The notes below the pieces were generated by a model. It was given only the letters and a program-made list of their open reading frames with translations. It did no database searches and was not told where the DNA came from. A DNA stretch of 64,000 bases from Vicugna vicugna (lineage: Eukaryota). Both the position numbers and the translations under genes were made by a program. The stretch covers positions 5,335,684-5,399,683 of the forward strand of contig MU061814.1 of NCBI GenBank assembly GCA_013265495.1, in the 5' to 3' direction. Shown piece after piece: positions 15,301-54,574 of this stretch (positions within the stretch are counted from its first letter, which is position 1; every line of letters begins with the position of its first letter).

Positions 15301-16023
15301 ATGCGCCTCAACAGCTCGGCGCCGGGCCCCCGGGTCGCACAGGGCAGCGACCCCTTCTCGCTGCTGCCGCTGCCGTCGTCGGGGCCGGAGGGGGCGCCCC
15401 TGACCTCGGGCTTCGGCAACAGCTCGGGCAACGTGTCGGAGCCCGTCCAAGCAGCGCCCAGCAGCGACCTGGATGTGAACACGGACATTTACTCCAAGGT
15501 GCTGGTGACCACCGTGTACCTGGCGCTCTTCGTGGTGGGCACAGCGGGCAACTCTGTGACGGCGTTCACGCTGGCGCGCAAGAGGTCCCTGCAGAACCTG
15601 CAGAGCACGGTGCACTACCACCTGGGCAGCCTGGCGCTCTCCGACCTGCTCATCCTCCTGCTGGCCATGCCTGTCGAGCTGTACAACTTCATCTGGGTAC
15701 ACCACCCCTGGGCCTTCGGCGACTCCGTGTGCCGCGGCTACTACTTCCTGCGTGACGCCTGCACCCACGCCACGGCCCTCAACGTGGCCAGCCTGAGTGT
15801 GGAGCGCTACCTGGCTCTCTGCCACCCCTTCAAGGCCAAGACCCTCATGTCCCGCAGCCGCACCAAGAAGTTCATCAGTGCCATCTGGCTGGCCTCCGGC
15901 CTGCTAGCCGTGCCCATGCTCTTCACCATGGGCCAGCAGAACCGCAGCACCGACGGCCAGCACCCCGGCGGCCTGGTGTGCACGCCCATCGTGGGCACCG
16001 CCACCATCAAGGTCGTCATCCAG
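15301..16023 (+). CDS. NTSR1: Neurotensin receptor 1, coding exon 1 (N-terminus, TM1-TM4, ECL2; 241 codons)
   Basis: ATG in CCTCCACCATGC context. Translates MRLNSSAPG...[15 protein letters not shown]...LALSDLL...[13 protein letters not shown]...SVERY...LVCTP...KVVIQ, the NTSR1 signature. Ends at donor CAG|GTGAGC (phase 0). Confidence 0.99.
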
Positions 16024-19000
16024 GTGAGCAGCCTCTTCAGGGGCGCGGGGCGGGGATGGGGGCGGGAGTGTGAGGGCACCAGGCTGGAGTCTGGCCTGGG
16101 GGCGAGGGTTGAAGGCACACCCCGGGAGGCCTCGGTGCTTCTCTTCCCCTCTCCCCAAAAGTAGTTTCTGGTCTGTATACACCCTGAGTGCGGGAAGTTG
16201 GGAAAAGGTCACAAAGAAATTTTACTCCTGGGAAGCTGAAAGGGGCTGGGGGCAGGGGAGGAGGGGCGAGGGGCTTGAGAACAGCCTGAGCCCCACTTCT
16301 TCCCTCCTTCCGCTTCAGGGTTGCCAGGTCTCAGCTCCCCCCACCCCCGTCTCATCCCTTTCTGCCATCAGAGTGGACTGGAACCCAGATCAGTGACTTC
16401 TCCAGGGGTGGGTGGGGGTCCATGGACAGGCCTCAGGTATGTCCACTCCCTGAGCTGGAAGGGAAATGTGTGCTGGCACCAGCCTCCTTCTGAAGAGAAT
16501 CCCTTCCATCAGCATCTCAGAAGGCACGTGGTCCCCGAGGCCAGGTCCCTGTCCTCTGCAGCAGGGCTGCCCCCAGGCCGCTCCCCAGAGCCTCCTGGCT
16601 GCCTGCCCCAGCCCACATATGGGAAGTGGAGCTCGACCTGAAGCTGTCTCCGGCCAGGTCCTACACTGAGTTTAGTCTCCCATTTCCCGTCTGTGAACTG
16701 TGGTCATCAGAGCTCCAACCTCAGAAGGCAGAAGTTCAAGAGAGAGTGTTGGGGAAGGGCCCTCGCGGTTCCCCGCTTGCAGAAGCACTCAAGGTGTTCT
16801 TATTGGTGATGGTGGTGACAACATTGTTCCTGCTGGGAGATTCCGAGGTATTTGGGCATGGTGGCTGGCGGTGGGCCCATGTGAGGTGAACGACCCTGGA
16901 GCCGGGTGACCAATGGCTCTCTGAGGGTCTGGTGGGAACCCAGGTGGGAGCCCTCCCTGGGAATCGGCTTGGCTGAGGCAGCCTGGCAGGGTAGGGGGCT
17001 TCTGGTCCTGGAGAGAAAGAGGTCTTATCAGGCAGGGCCCTGAAGTGGGAGGAGGGTGTCCACCGAAGCTAGTGCTGGAAGAGATACCACTTTGAATGGC
17101 ATCGTGGCCGAGGATGTGGGCAGAGGTGGAGGTGAAGGGGCTTCCTCCATCCCAGGGTGGGAGAGGGAAGGAGCGTCTGGGCGGGACCTCCACACCCCTG
17201 CGTGGTAGGGGCGGGGTGTGCCAGAGCGGCTGGCTGTCCCCGCTGGCTGTCCTTTCATACCCCAGCCGCCAGCAGCCTCCCAGCGCAGAACTTGTGCCGC
17301 TGCCTCGGAAGCCCAAGTCTGACAGCGGTGCTGGGAAAGGAGGGGCTGGTGAGCCGGGGTGGGCAGGCCGGGGTGGGCGGAGCTGTCGTCCGCACGACCA
17401 CCCTGGGCTGCAGCTGACCCTGCACAGGCCACCACCAGTGTAGACCGAGTGGGCAGAATTAGGCTCCAGGCCTCCCTTGCCTGCGCTGGAAACTCGTGCC
17501 TACAGGTGTCCCCGCGTGGAGTGGTCCTGGCAGCCACACGCAGCAGGGAGCTGGAGGCCGTGCCTCTGCGCTGACGCCTTCCCTGCCCTGGAGGTGAAGG
17601 CAAACAGGGTGTGTGCGGTAAACAGTGAGAATTACCTTCTTGCTTCCTTTGAGTGCTTGATGGGCTGTGCCCTGGTTGGGGGCCAGCAACCACGACACCT
17701 GCCTTCAAAGGAGTGACGTGGCAGGTCCAGGTCAGTGGCTCGGGGCCGGGGCACTCGCTGCCCACCCCAGAGACCCCGCTGTGGGCTCAGCCAGGAGCAG
17801 CCTGGGTTGGGATCAAGGACAACAGTGGCCGCAGAGGGGCATGACCCCTCCACAGCACCCTCGGCCTTGACCCCGTGGCCGCCCCGCTGGTGCCGCAGAC
17901 TCAGGCACCACCGTGACGCGGTCTGAGTCCTCTTGGTCAGAGGCTGTGACACCGGTACGGTCCAGGGCGCATCCTGGTCATTTGTCCACTTGGCAGGTGT
18001 CTTTTGAGCGCGTGCTGCAGAAGGTCGGCTTCAGCGCCCGCGGCTAGGGCCGCCTGAGCGTTTGCTGAGTGCTCGCTGGCTTCCGGGCGCCCTCGGAGAG
18101 CGGAGGTGCCATTTTTCTTTGAAGGTCACGGCACGTGCTTGGGAGACACACTTGGGAGAGACGGATGGGCTGATTATGAGAGACGCTCTTTGCTCTGTGA
18201 ACCGGCTGCTCCGTGTGCCTGCAAGAACATTCCTTTTGGGCCAGCTAGGCCCCGGCCTTGCTGCCCCCCTCCCTTCTGCGCCGCCATCCACCATCTGCCA
18301 TCCGCCATCCCAGGAGAGGGTTCCCAGGGGATTTTTCCTTCCCTACCCGGGCTTCTGGGCCACTTGGCAGACCTGGGCCCACTTCCACTGTTTTTGAACA
18401 GTGACATCTGTCCAGACAGGGGCTGGGTGCCTGTATCTGTGTGTCTCCCTCTTGTGGACCATGTGTGGGAGGGTAGAGATGTTGGCCAATCAAAATGGCT
18501 GTCACTCAGGAGACGCTCGTGTCCATGGGCACATGGACCCCAGGCAGCGTCCTGGACGCCCAGGCCATTAAAGTCTGACGTGCTTCCACGGAGGCAGAGG
18601 CAACTGAGACCTGTCTCTGCAAAGTGCAAGAAAATTGGTTCCAATAAAATCAGGACACGGATCATTTCCCCAGAGTTTCTGCCCCTGTCACCAGCCAAGC
18701 CCGGTGACCTCCTCCGCCCATCCGTCCACCTGCCCACTCCCCATTCGCTGATCCTCTTTTCCTTCCTGAGCCGGCTCAGCCTCAGTGATGCTGACACTCA
18801 GGGCTGAAGTTTAAGTCACAGGGTCCCCACAAGAGCGCTGTTACGTCGGGGAGACGTGGCAGACCCTGGAGCAGACACCCCCAGGGCTTGTACCACCATG
18901 TGGCTCCTGCTGTATGCACCGAGGACCTGCACCCTGCCCACCAGGTCGTAAGGCAGAGACAGGGCGGGGCTGTTCTGTATTAACGGGGATTAAAGAGCCG

Positions 19001-49188: not shown

Positions 49189-49390
49189 ATCAACACCTTC
49201 ATGTCCTTCATCTTCCCCATGGTGGTCATCTCCATCTTGAACACCATCATCGCCAACAAGCTGACTGTGATGGTCCGCCAGGCGGCCGAGCAGGGCCGGG
49301 TGTGCACGGCTGGGGACCAGCACAGCAACTTCAGCATGTCCATCGAGCCCGGCAGGGCCCAGGCCCTGCGGCACGGCGTCCAGGTCTTAC
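49189..49390 (+). CDS. NTSR1: NTSR1 coding exon 2 (TM5, ICL3; 202 nt)
   Basis: Acceptor ccccgtccctctgcAG. Translates [36 protein letters not shown]...[10 protein letters not shown]. Donor C|GTACGT (phase 1). Confidence 0.99.
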
Positions 49391-49544
49391 GTACGTAACA
49401 GCTGGGCCCCACAGGGGTGGGTGGTGGCCAGGGGCCGGCAACGCAGTGAGCTCCCCACCAACAAACCAGGGAGGCTTAGAGATCCGGGTAGTGGAGCATG
49501 TCGGGGCCAAGGCCACTAGACCGCGAGTCCCCTCCCCACCGCCA

Positions 49545-50985
49545 GCCCCTGGTAACCATCGTTCTACTTCCTGAGCCTACGAATTTGACAACGCTCAGTG
49601 CCGACTGTAGGCGGAATCCCACGGTATTTGTGCTGTTTCTGACTGTTATTCACGTGAGTAACAACGTCCTCAAGTCTCATCCATGCGGTCGCAGGTGTCA
49701 GGATGCCCTTCCTTTTCAAGACTGAATAGCATTCCACGGTAGGGAGGGGCCGCGTTTTGTTTCTCCATCATCCGCCGGTGGACGCCTGGGCTGCGTCCAC
49801 CGTGTGGCCTCTGTGCCAGGAGCTGCTGTGCTGAGGCGCTGGAGCCCGTCTGCGCTCCGGCTTTCTGTTCTTTGGGGGCATTTGCCCGGGAGTAGAGTTG
49901 CTGAATCATATGCTAATTCCATTTTTGACTTTTTGAATTAAAAAATATTTTTAAACAGCCACACAGTTTTCTGAAGTGGCTGCACCATTTTACATTCCCA
50001 CCAACAGTGCACAAGTGTTCCAGTGTTTCCATGCCTTCCCCCAAATTGCTGTTTTCTGTTCTGCTTTTGTTCTCTTGGCGGTTGCCTTCCTACTGTGTGC
50101 GAGGCGGTATCCTGCTGCAGCTTTGACTGGCCTTTCCCTGGTGATCAGCCACGCCGAGCACCTTTTCAGGGGCTTTTAGGCCATTCGCAGATCTTCAGAG
50201 AAACGACTGCTCATTGCCCACTTTTGAACAGGGCTGTTGCTTTTTGTTGCTGCGTTTAGCGCACTGCCAACCCAGGATGCTAACCCCTTGTCTGAGATGT
50301 GATGCGAATGTACTGCCTTTTCAGTCTGTTAACTGTGTCCTTTAATACACGGGTTCTCATTTTCGTGCAGCCCAGATTATTTACTTGTTCTTTCATCTGT
50401 ACGTTTGGTGCACTAAGAAGTCACTTTCAAATTAAATATTGTGAAAATTTTGTGCTGTGTTTTCTTCTGAGTGTTTCATATGCTTAGCTATTATGTCTGG
50501 ATCTTCGATCCATTTTGAGTTCATTTTTGCACATGGTGTGAGGTAAGGGTCCAGCTCCATTCTTTTGCTTGTCAGTGTCCGGTTTTCCTAGCACATTTGT
50601 TGAAAAGACAGCCTTCCCCAGTGAATGGCCTTGGTGTCCTGCAGGAGGTCATCTGACCATATGTGTCAGGGCGTCATTCCAGGTCCTCTGTTCTAGACCG
50701 TTGGTCTGCATGTCTGTCCTGATGCCAGCACCGCACTGTTTTGATGACTGTAGCTTTGTGGTAGGTTTGAAGTCGGGAGGTGTGATTCCTCCAGCTTTGT
50801 TCTTCTTTCTCAAGATGTTTTGGCTGTTCAGGGTCCCTTGAGATTCCAAGTGAATTCTCCTACTTCTGCCCAAGATGTCATCAGCATTTCAATCGATGTT
50901 GCATTGAATCCGTAGATCGCTTTGGGCAGCCTTGTCATCCTAACAGGATTAAGTCTTTCAACCCATGGACACGGGACGTGTCCGT
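49545..50985 (-). mobile_element. LINE-1 3' fragment filling most of NTSR1 intron 2
   Basis: CCCTGGTAACCATCGTTCTAC (L1 3' end). Minus ORF 50649-50873 [17 protein letters not shown] matches L1 ORF2 [14 protein letters not shown]. Confidence 0.92.
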
Positions 50986-51017
50986 CCACCTCCCTGAGGC
51001 CCGTGTCTGTGTCGCAG

Positions 51018-51108
51018 GTGCCGTGGTCATCGCCTTCGTGGTCTGCTGGCTGCCTTACCACGTGCGGCGCCTTATGTTCTGCTACATCTCGGACGAGCAG
51101 TGGACCCC
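51018..51108 (+). CDS. NTSR1: NTSR1 coding exon 3 (TM6, ECL3; 91 nt), with non-canonical TT donor
   Basis: Acceptor gtctgtgtcgcAG. Translates (R)[29 protein letters not shown](P), including the CWxP motif. The 91-nt length restores frame to exon 4, but the following bases are TTGAGT rather than GTGAGT. Confidence 0.95.
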
Positions 51109-52233
51109 TTGAGTACCGGGAGGCTGGGGCGGGGCGTGCCCCCCAGAGCAGGAGGGTGCAGGGGGGACGCTGGGAGGAGCGGCTCAGCCGCGGGTCAGGT
51201 GTCCCCCAGTGGGCCCCCAGGTGGGACTGTGACTGGGCTGGGGGCAGAAGGCGGTGGAGACACAGACTCTCAAGGAAGCTGCTGCCAGAGAACAGAAGCA
51301 GATGGTAAGACAGTCCCCGAATGAGACAGGCTTGGGGCGCCTGGAGAGTGACAAGGCAAGGATGGCTCTGCTGTGTGGGAGAAGGGACGGTGCCTGCCAG
51401 GGCTCCCAGGCCACCCTCAGCCTGGAGGAGCTGCTCAGAGGACCCCCAGGCTCCAAGAGCATCATGCCCATGCTGTGACGTGTGCCGGTGAGGCCATATG
51501 ACACGTGGACACCAGCGAGGCCGGCCTGGCCAGTGGGGCCTCCCTGAGACGGCAGCCTTTCTGGATCCCACTGTGTGAGCTCTTCTGCACAGCAAGGCTG
51601 CCAGATCCAAGGGTCATGGGTTCTTCCAAGTGATGGGGAGCCCCTGGGGAGAGCAAGTCTGGGAAGGAAGAGAAGTTACAGGGTGTGGAGCACAAGTTAA
51701 AATGAAGTATTTCAGAAACTCAGGGCAGCCTGGTGGTGAAGGGAGCTGCCTGGTGAGGGAGTGAGGTCCCTGTGGGTGGAGGCAAGCAAGCCGGGGATGA
51801 GGTGCACAGCTGCTGGGAGGTTTGGACTGGGTTCCTGCCCTGGCTATTCAGTTGAGGGCAGGCTCCAGCCTAGCCCTGCAGCCCTGGCTGGGACTCTGCA
51901 CAAGGAAGGGCAGGCCAGGCGGGCTGCAGCGAGAGGTGGAGACTGCAGCAAAGTGGAGAGGCCCACCCTGCCCCAGGAGGCGGCTGCAACTCGGCTCAGC
52001 AGCTCAGCTGACTGGTGCCAGGCGGGAGTGTGGTCAGGACTTCCAGCTCCTCAAGAGAAGCCAGAACCCTGGAATTTATTAGGAAATACCCCCACATCAG
52101 AAAATGTACCAGTGCTTTTGCATTATTGCCCCACACCCCCATGCCTGCAGCCGCCATCAGCCAGGGGCTGCCGCTCGCAGGCCCCGCGGCCCCGCGGCCC
52201 CAGCGGGTTCTGAGCACCCTCTCCCGGCCACAG

Positions 52234-52483
52234 GTTCCTCTACGACTTCTACCACTACTTCTACATGCTGACCAACGCCCTCTTCTACGTCAGCTCCACC
52301 ATCAACCCCATCCTCTACAACCTCGTCTCCGCCAGCTTCCGCCAGACCTTCCTGTCCACCCTGGCCTGCCTCTGTCCCCTGTGGGGGCGCAGGAGGAAGA
52401 GGCCGACCTTCTCGAGGAAGGCTAACAGCGTGTCCAGCAACCACACCTTCTCCAGCAACGTCACCCGGGAAGCGCTGTACTAG
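52234..52483 (+). CDS. NTSR1: NTSR1 coding exon 4 (TM7, helix 8, C-tail, stop TAG)
   Basis: Acceptor ctctcccggccacAG. Translates (P)[32 protein letters not shown]...ACLCP...[18 protein letters not shown], with NPxxY and the CLC palmitoylation motif. Confidence 0.99.
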
Positions 52484-54574
52484 GGCGGCAGGGCTGGGAC
52501 GGGCGGGAGGGGCTGCCACTCAGCCTCCGCCCCTGACTCAGCAGGGGGGTGGCCCAAGTGGGCGCTGCTGCTGTGGGGGGGCCCGCACTCCAGGGGCCCC
52601 CGCTTCTTCTCCACACCTCCTCTCTCCCGTTCCCTCTCCCCCGCCTCCTCTCTTCTTTGAAAGCCAGAGAGAGGTTGATCCAGATCCAAAAAGGGCCTTG
52701 AATGAAGAGAAATTAGTGTTGGGTGGAAGGCAGGCTTCTTTGTTCTCGGACTAATGGATGTCGGGAGAGAAAGAAAGGAGCAGTTGGGGCCAGGCTCCCC
52801 GGCAGCCAGGCCGGCGTGGGGAGGGCGGTGACCCCGAGAGCTGGCGCTGGAAGGAGCCCTGCCGGCAGGACCACCACTGTCCTGGTGCCGCAGAGAAGAC
52901 CCCCATTGCGCCTCCTCAGCTCAGAAGCGAGTCAGCCCCACACGCCGCAGGCACCTGTCCCCACACCTCTCCGAGGACGAGTCCCAGAAGGCTTTGACAT
53001 CTCAAGAGGACAATGAAGGGGCCAGCCTGGTATTACCCCGACCCAGCCCTCCCCGTCTCGCCTGTGGTCAGAGGACGCGAGGCTCTGCAGGGACACCGCA
53101 GGGCAGCTCGGCCTCAAGCCCCTCCATCCCGGCTCTGCAGAATCAAGGCCAGGTCAGTGCAGTCCCAGTGGCCCAGGCCATGACAGGGACGTCCCCGTGC
53201 CCTCTCACAGCCGCTGTCAAGCTGAGCTCCTGCAGCCTGGCTCCGAGCTGCCTCCGGGTGTTCGTCCCAAGGCAGAGGGGAGTCTCAGCTGGGCTCCAAG
53301 AGATGCCAGCCCTGGGGACTGGGCCGCAGGTGAGGAGGAGGAGCCATGGGTACAGGCAGCCCGCTGGCCAGCAGCCAGGCTGAGGCCCAGACCTGTCTGT
53401 CACGGCCACCAGGCAGGCCCAGCCCCAGCTTCGGGTGCCCAGCAGCACAGGCACCTCCTTGGTGTCTGGGAGCCAGTCTCCAGACAGAATGGCCTGGCCC
53501 CAGGAAGGTGCCCTGCGCCAGGGGAAAGCGGATCCCAGGGAAGCTGCCCTGGACCAGCTGGGACCTCGAGTGGCAGAAAGGCCCTGAGAGTGACACGCAG
53601 GCCCTTTGAAGCAGGTTTTCCCTGGGCCTGGGAGCAGGCAGACGGTTGGACAGGCAGACAACCCACGGGGTCAGCCCTGACTTGGGATCAGAGTCAGGGT
53701 CAGCCAGGACTCAGCCTCCCCACCCACAAGCACGGCGAGTTGGAGGCTGCATTGTCCAGTGTCACTTCGGATCTGGACACTCTGCTGTGAATCAATGTAT
53801 GACTTGAGCCCCACAAAATCCTCCTCCAAGCTATTCACCAAGAACAGGGCCACCAGCTGGTCCCCAGGCCAGGCAGCCCTCCCATGACTCAGTGGCCACT
53901 GTCGCCGGGGGAGCCCAGCGGACAGGCCCAAGGTCATTGCAGCCCCCAGCCCGGCCCGGCAAGTGGGCATCTGAGTTCAGCAAAGATCAAGTCCAGGCCC
54001 GGGCATCAGCCTCCAAGAGGAGGGCCTGGGTTCTGTGAACAGGTCCCCAGGCCGCCCCGACATCCCTGGGCCTCGGGCCCCCTTCAGACCCAGCGAGTCC
54101 CCTGAGCCCTGGGCGTGGGCGCGCTCTTCCCACCCACCCAGCCACGACTGGATGTGACGGCCCCGGAGGCCCCAGCCTGGAGTGGACGGAGGGGACGGTT
54201 CCCTGAGGTGGGAGCGGAGCGGACGCGGGATGAGGTGCCCACAGCCCCAGGCGCCGTGGGGGGCAAGTGGGTGGGGCCTGCAGCTGAGCCCCGAGTCCCC
54301 TTTGCTGTGCCCACTTCACGGCACAGGAGGGGACCCGTGTCTGCCCCAGTTCTGGCCACATCTCCTTTCAACCTCAGAGGCCGGCTCTGTGTGCCGTGCA
54401 CGTGGTCTCAGAGCCCAGTGCCCACGTGACCGGTCAACAGTGATGGCAAACCCCCACGGTATGCGCTGGCCCCGCCGCATCACACGTCCTGCAGCGACAG
54501 GGACAACCCCTGCCTCTCAGGAAAGGAGTAAAGGAGACTGTGGACCCCGCGACCTGCCCCCTGAGGGGGCCAGC

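Follow-up and report, generated by a model that had tools for sequence, protein, structure and literature searches.

Most mutations that convert a GT splice donor to TT disrupt splicing, and in reporters the use of non-canonical donors, which follows the order GC > TT > AT > GA > GG > CT, is strictly dependent on flanking enhancers (Erkelenz et al. 2018, PMC6280755). For a TT donor to be cleaved accurately at +1, both a second GT at +5/+6 and suboptimal complementarity to U1 were required (PMC6280755). In FANCC c.165+1G>T (Hartmann et al. 2010; PMC6280755), the substitution at +1 makes TT, the GT at +5/+6 is kept, and some accurate cleavage can persist at the TT, so that the allele is hypomorphic. 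Constitutive splicing of a TT-AG intron is known from ETV1, and the AT-AG intron of ACTR10 arose recently from a GT-AG intron in primates (Parada et al. 2014, PMC4176328). For F7 IVS6+1G>T, exon skipping was the dominant outcome, an in-frame product of a cryptic donor made up 8%, and the correct product was undetectable (Cavallari et al. 2012, PMC3787739).

Here we describe a putative TT donor at intron 3 of NTSR1 in Vicugna vicugna. The window, by which we mean the whole 64,000-nucleotide stretch of DNA that was analysed, contains the complete gene (Table 1; a slash marks an exon-intron boundary here and below). The spliced coding sequence of 1266 nt encodes 421 aa with a single, terminal stop, and every splice site except the intron 3 donor is canonical. 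The gene is an NTSR1 orthologue, a class A GPCR: exon 1 matches Pfam 7tm_1 (E=2e-32), its best database matches are all NTSR1, including a dromedary NTSR1-like model (P0001) that is 98% identical, the translated 421 aa share 89-90% identity with cetartiodactyl NTSR1, and the four exons align with the pig, goat and blue whale loci at identical boundaries. We take exon 4 to be the last exon from the established structure of the gene, in agreement with the stop codon and the orthologue models. An L1 element, present as its 3′ part, makes up most of intron 2 (window ~49500-50950) and stops ~70 nt short of exon 3.

Table 1. Coordinates of NTSR1 and of the sequence features around its intron 3 donor.
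Feature	Position in window	Strand	Description
NTSR1 gene, complete, four exons	window	+	boundaries set by homology
Exon 1 CDS	15301-16023	+	241 aa, N-tail to TM5; donor GTGAGC at 16024
Exon 2	49189-49390	+	202 nt; TM5 end, ICL3, TM6 start; acceptor ctgcag; donor GTACGT
Exon 3	51018-51108	+	91 nt; TM6 and ECL3 start; acceptor tcgcag; 3′ end GAG CAG TGG ACC CC
Intron 3	51109-52233	+	1125 nt; acceptor ...ctctcccggccacag
Exon 4 CDS	52234-52483	+	TM7, NPxxY, helix 8, C-tail; acceptor cacag; stop TAG
Intron 3 donor TTGAGT	51109-51114	+	T at +1; second GT at +5/+6
In-frame TGA after exon 3 donor	51110-51112	+	met on intron 3 retention
Cryptic GT, GCA/GTGGAC	51100-51105	+	9 nt upstream of donor, in frame; very weak U1 match
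Nearest downstream GT, TGA/GTACCG	51113-51118	+	behind stop, out of frame, weak

The locus was compared with NTSR1 of pig, goat and blue whale, with a Camelus contig (L005) and with the dromedary locus L001 (GCA_036321535.1), which matches ~21 kb of flanking DNA at 95% identity, as would be expected of a South American camelid, the sister group of Camelus. L005 is a 2.3-kb Logan contig from run SRR36380801, found by exact look-up of a 72-aa ORF in exon 4, and is 95.9% identical to window positions 50939-53267. We assign it to an Old World camel because a dromedary protein has an identical counterpart in a sister run of that series.

Window positions 51104-51114 read ACCCCTTGAGT; exon 3 is followed by TTGAGTAC, so the T at 51109 is donor position +1. 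The earlier note had called this donor TT rather than GT, and the alignment to pig, goat and blue whale fixes the junction where it had been placed: the T lies exactly at +1 because the annotated NTSR1 proteins of these three species need the same junction. At this junction GTGGACCCC/GTGAGTA is shared by the Old World camel contig and by pig, goat and blue whale, and the window alone reads CCCC/TTGAGTA. The +1 base is the sole difference from Camelus within the 55 bases of 51094-51148, and the intron 3 acceptor, CAG/GTTCCT, is conserved in the pig, goat and blue whale alignments. Intron 3 has TT at +1/+2 and AG at its 3′ end (cacAG), and the TT is not conserved in Camelus, whose contig L005 has GT. 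Comparison with related species at 51109, a check that had been proposed, returned G in Camelus and the three outgroups. Because all four carry G, the T would be derived after the split from Camelus, private to one animal, or an error.

This polarity also bears on the in-frame stop reported directly behind the donor. The TGA is present, but it is not a new feature: it is part of the GTGAGT donor, and CCG TGA occurs in every species compared, so it is ancestral. All three of the explanations offered earlier (a recent loss-of-function or hypomorphic allele, a TT-AG intron and a one-base error) still stand, and the comparison adds support for a derived, relatively young change. Two further assignments of the intron were rejected. 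A U12-type intron is refuted by the donor, since TTGAGTAC does not fit the /RTATCCTT consensus, and a shifted donor/acceptor pair is refuted because every shift gives non-GT/non-AG pairs.

Splice-site strength is expressed here as counts of consensus matches only. By this count, CCC/TTGAGT matches the consensus at 5 of 9 positions; positions +2 to +7 can pair with U1, and -2/-1 are CC. A GT is present at +5/+6, and the competing -1 register is closed because there is no G at -1. No strong GT competitor lies within ~90 nt of the TT donor. The GT at 51100, which the earlier note had missed, keeps the frame (-9 nt), shares only 2 of 9 positions with the U1 consensus (GCA/GTGGAC), and its use would delete W337-T338-P339, of which W337 is invariant in all 55 orthologues that have a residue there.

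Recomputation returned the truncated products that had been predicted for failure of this donor. If intron 3 is retained, the frame continues as CCT TGA and ends at 339 aa, the next GT (51113) comes after that TGA and leads to the same stop, and skipping of exon 3 shifts the frame to give R plus 11 residues and a product of 320 aa. The argument that these stops should escape NMD likewise holds, because all of them are in the last exon or within a few bases of it.

The coding sequence itself is strongly constrained. Exon 4 is identical to that of Camelus at 250 of 250 positions, synonymous sites included, exon 3 at 90 of 91 (the one change being synonymous) and exon 1 at 713 of 723. Intron 3 shows 2.45% substitution divergence, and the tail of intron 2 and the 3′UTR are about 5% diverged. 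Thus 11 of 1064 coding nucleotides differ from Camelus where ~28 would be expected at the intronic rate (Poisson P=2e-4). When changes were polarised with outgroups, two nonsynonymous substitutions were derived in the window lineage, L29P and L33P, which fall in the N-terminal tail, a variable region, together with 4-5 synonymous changes, a number similar to that on the Camelus branch. Comparison with 57 full-length orthologues revealed no other lesions in the NTSR1 coding sequence. The claim that the rest of the coding sequence is intact is therefore borne out by the 421-aa frame and the strong constraint relative to Camelus. As a separate observation, the lack of any synonymous change in exon 4 is striking for a GC-rich exon, and the adjoining 3′UTR (52484-53267) is 5% diverged.

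From the two nonsynonymous changes, we estimate that neutral evolution could cover at most about a third to half of this lineage's branch. If the T inactivates NTSR1, the inactivation would not be ancient, and any loss of function would be young because the coding sequence is strongly constrained relative to Camelus. Long-standing pseudogenisation is ruled out by the same retained constraint. The closest general parallel, lineage-specific loss of a unitary gene in mammals, shares with this locus a conserved single-copy gene and one change of an inactivating type in one lineage; in contrast, the window has one lesion in one individual with constraint retained, short of what is usually taken as gene loss. 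Neither relaxed constraint nor further inactivating lesions, both expected of a unitary pseudogene, were found in the coding sequence. Such constraint is equally compatible with a young allele, a functioning intron and a base error.

Several residues set the camelid receptors apart. Substitutions at positions conserved in 93-98% of the 57 orthologues are V82A, K95R, A142S, Y156H (in TM3, DACT-Y-ATAL) and I173L (adjoining the ERY motif). All five are common to the window and the dromedary (P0001, P0121) and therefore predate the split of the two camelid lineages; they are also the only unusual residues at highly conserved positions of exon 1. Across exons 2-4 the most notable unusual residue is R306Q (exon 2, window 49305-49307 region), at the cytoplasmic end of TM6 (GV-R-VLR), where 51 of 57 orthologues have R and none has Q; V298A is a further substitution in exon 2.

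We tentatively favour, with somewhat less than even confidence, the interpretation that the T at 51109 is a real, young +1 G>T variant that cripples the intron 3 donor and makes the allele null or severely hypomorphic. According to this interpretation, the transversion would have arisen among the South American camelids once they had separated from Camelus, and it may segregate or be recently fixed. The ancestral donor, CCC/GTGAGT, leaned almost wholly on its intronic half for pairing with U1. With U at +1, splicing biochemistry suggests that most transcripts would fail to join exon 3 to exon 4 (Erkelenz et al. 2018; Cavallari et al. 2012), and would instead retain intron 3 or skip exon 3, giving the 339- and 320-residue products, both of which would lack TM7, NPxxY and helix 8. 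Exact cleavage at the TT may persist in a minor fraction of transcripts, as the closed -1 register, the GT at +5/+6 and the lack of strong GT competitors nearby would allow, in which case the allele would be severely hypomorphic and not completely null.

Two +1 G>T alleles are informative for this interpretation. F7 IVS6+1G>T (PMC3787739) is alike in that the gene is otherwise intact and in that frameshifting exon skipping is accompanied by a minor in-frame cryptic product, as predicted here; by analogy, we expect mostly skipping or retention at NTSR1, with at best a trickle of correct mRNA. However, F7 is a human disease allele for which transcripts were measured, and the cryptic site in the window is much weaker and its use removes an invariant Trp. 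The residual use of the TT donor in FANCC c.165+1G>T that the earlier note had mentioned agrees with the literature (PMC6280755). Whereas the FANCC site, atG/TTAAGTAg, has G at -1 and A at +3, the window site, ccC/TTGAGTac, which is known from sequence alone, has no exonic pairing.

An explanation that we consider distinctly possible, although somewhat doubtful, is a one-base error of assembly or consensus, in which case position 51109 would be G in the animal and intron 3 of the usual GT-AG kind. The T is a single-base difference at a site that is invariant in the four other lineages examined, in a gene that is otherwise perfect and strongly constrained, with no compensatory change around the donor; the lack of other lesions or of relaxed constraint fits such an error just as well as a crippling variant. 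On the other hand, the assembly looks locally ordinary, with a clean alignment to Camelus over 2.3 kb that contains 8 indels, none of them in exons, and a normal ratio of transitions to transversions (48:23). Moreover, real individuals do carry splice-site variants in dispensable genes; Ntsr1-null mice are viable. We also observed that the window is one base shorter than Camelus at 51163, 51333 and 51442, two of these differences falling at G or C runs and the third lacking an A inside a G run. These length differences may be real, or may be homopolymer errors in either sequence.

We searched for independent sequence at this position. Fourteen DNA runs, from three organisms and seven studies, hold 0.90-0.96 of the sampled words of the window, a measure whose resolution does not reach position 51109. 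For three RNA-labelled runs (X15-X17) the share was 0.10-0.23, and these are probably from Old World camel, as ~96% identity leaves about a quarter of 31-mers and the Camelus contigs derive from two 2025 runs, SRR36380800 and SRR36380801. A search of the gene index for independent South American camelid sequence with the minus-strand ORF beside the donor gave no matches, and South American camelid runs appear to be absent from that index. A search with the exon 4 peptide gave no camelid match, the 72-aa exon 4 ORF led by exact look-up to a Camelus contig only, the read-through ORF of exon 1 had no exact counterpart on record, and exact DNA pattern scans of JGI metagenomes and GTDB genomes for host contamination gave 0 hits. 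The literature found on NTSR1 in camelids or on loss of neurotensin-receptor genes consisted of nanobody and pharmacology papers only.

Some further observations concern the Old World camel gene. No full-length camelid NTSR1 model occurs among the protein cluster members listed, the two largest clusters being listed in part. The only two dromedary NTSR1 models among these members are both truncated: one of 257 aa consists of exon 1 and a 16-aa alternative exon ~2.7 kb downstream (L001 10001-12750), and one of 287 aa is exon 1 read into intron 1 (L006, GCA_000803125.3). Despite these truncated models, both exon 4 and the donor of exon 3 are intact in Camelus. Two contigs from 2025 runs are long and unspliced: L007 (SRR36380800, 13.5 kb) spans the promoter, exon 1 and intron 1, and the 2.3-kb L005 runs from intron 2 through the 3′UTR. 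We suspect that SRR36380800 and SRR36380801 are among the metagenome-labelled RNA-Seq runs X15-X17, which would hint at genomic DNA or nascent RNA in those libraries.

Less probable is that intron 3 is an efficient U2-type TT-AG intron, in which the T is fixed in South American camelids, cleavage still occurs at 51108/51109 and the receptor is normal; we consider this unlikely. Precedents exist in the constitutive ETV1 intron and the lineage-specific conversion to AT-AG in ACTR10 (PMC4176328), and TT is the best non-canonical dinucleotide after GC (PMC6280755). The two features linked to accurate TT cleavage by Erkelenz et al., a GT at +5/+6 (which the earlier note had missed) and suboptimal U1 pairing, both hold for CCC/TTGAGT, no strong GT competes nearby, and an intact, constrained coding sequence is what would be expected of a gene that still functions. 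The TT-AG introns of ETV1 and FBXO9 (PMC4176328; Erkelenz et al. 2018) are alike in being U2-type, with TT, an AG acceptor and GT at +5/+6. However, these known natural sites (aAG/TTAAGT) pair at A-2 and G-1 and have RNA support, whereas the window has C-2 and C-1, is read from DNA and does not share its TT with Camelus. Also against efficient splicing, no compensatory strengthening of the site is seen relative to Camelus, the reporters needed flanking enhancers strictly, and most GT>TT mutations abolish splicing (PMC6280755).

Rescue by the in-frame cryptic donor at 51100, with a main product that lacks W337-T338-P339 of extracellular loop 3, keeps the frame and has a precedent in the cryptic donor used by F7 +1G>T (PMC3787739), but we consider it very improbable given the 2 of 9 consensus positions at this site and the invariance of W337, the loss of which would probably leave the product poor at binding ligand.

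If the T is an error, the consequence is caution about this assembly. If it is real and efficiently spliced, the locus would offer a rare, datable conversion of a canonical donor into a TT donor that works, in a GPCR gene that is deeply conserved. It seems improbable that llamas, alpacas, guanacos and vicunas all have the T as a fixed base and still remove the intron accurately, making this a newborn constitutive TT-AG intron less than ~20 million years old; such an intron would work without exonic U1 pairing, would depend on its GT at +5/+6, and would put the rules for TT donors to a natural test.

If the T is instead real and crippling, as we tentatively favour, all or some South American camelids would by nature be hypomorphic or null for NTSR1. 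This would bear on the llamas and alpacas that are immunised with NTSR1 to obtain nanobodies. NTSR1 is the main receptor for the effects of neurotensin on body temperature, feeding, gut fat handling and dopamine signalling, and because of these roles a crippled receptor would be of interest to physiologists of these high-altitude animals.
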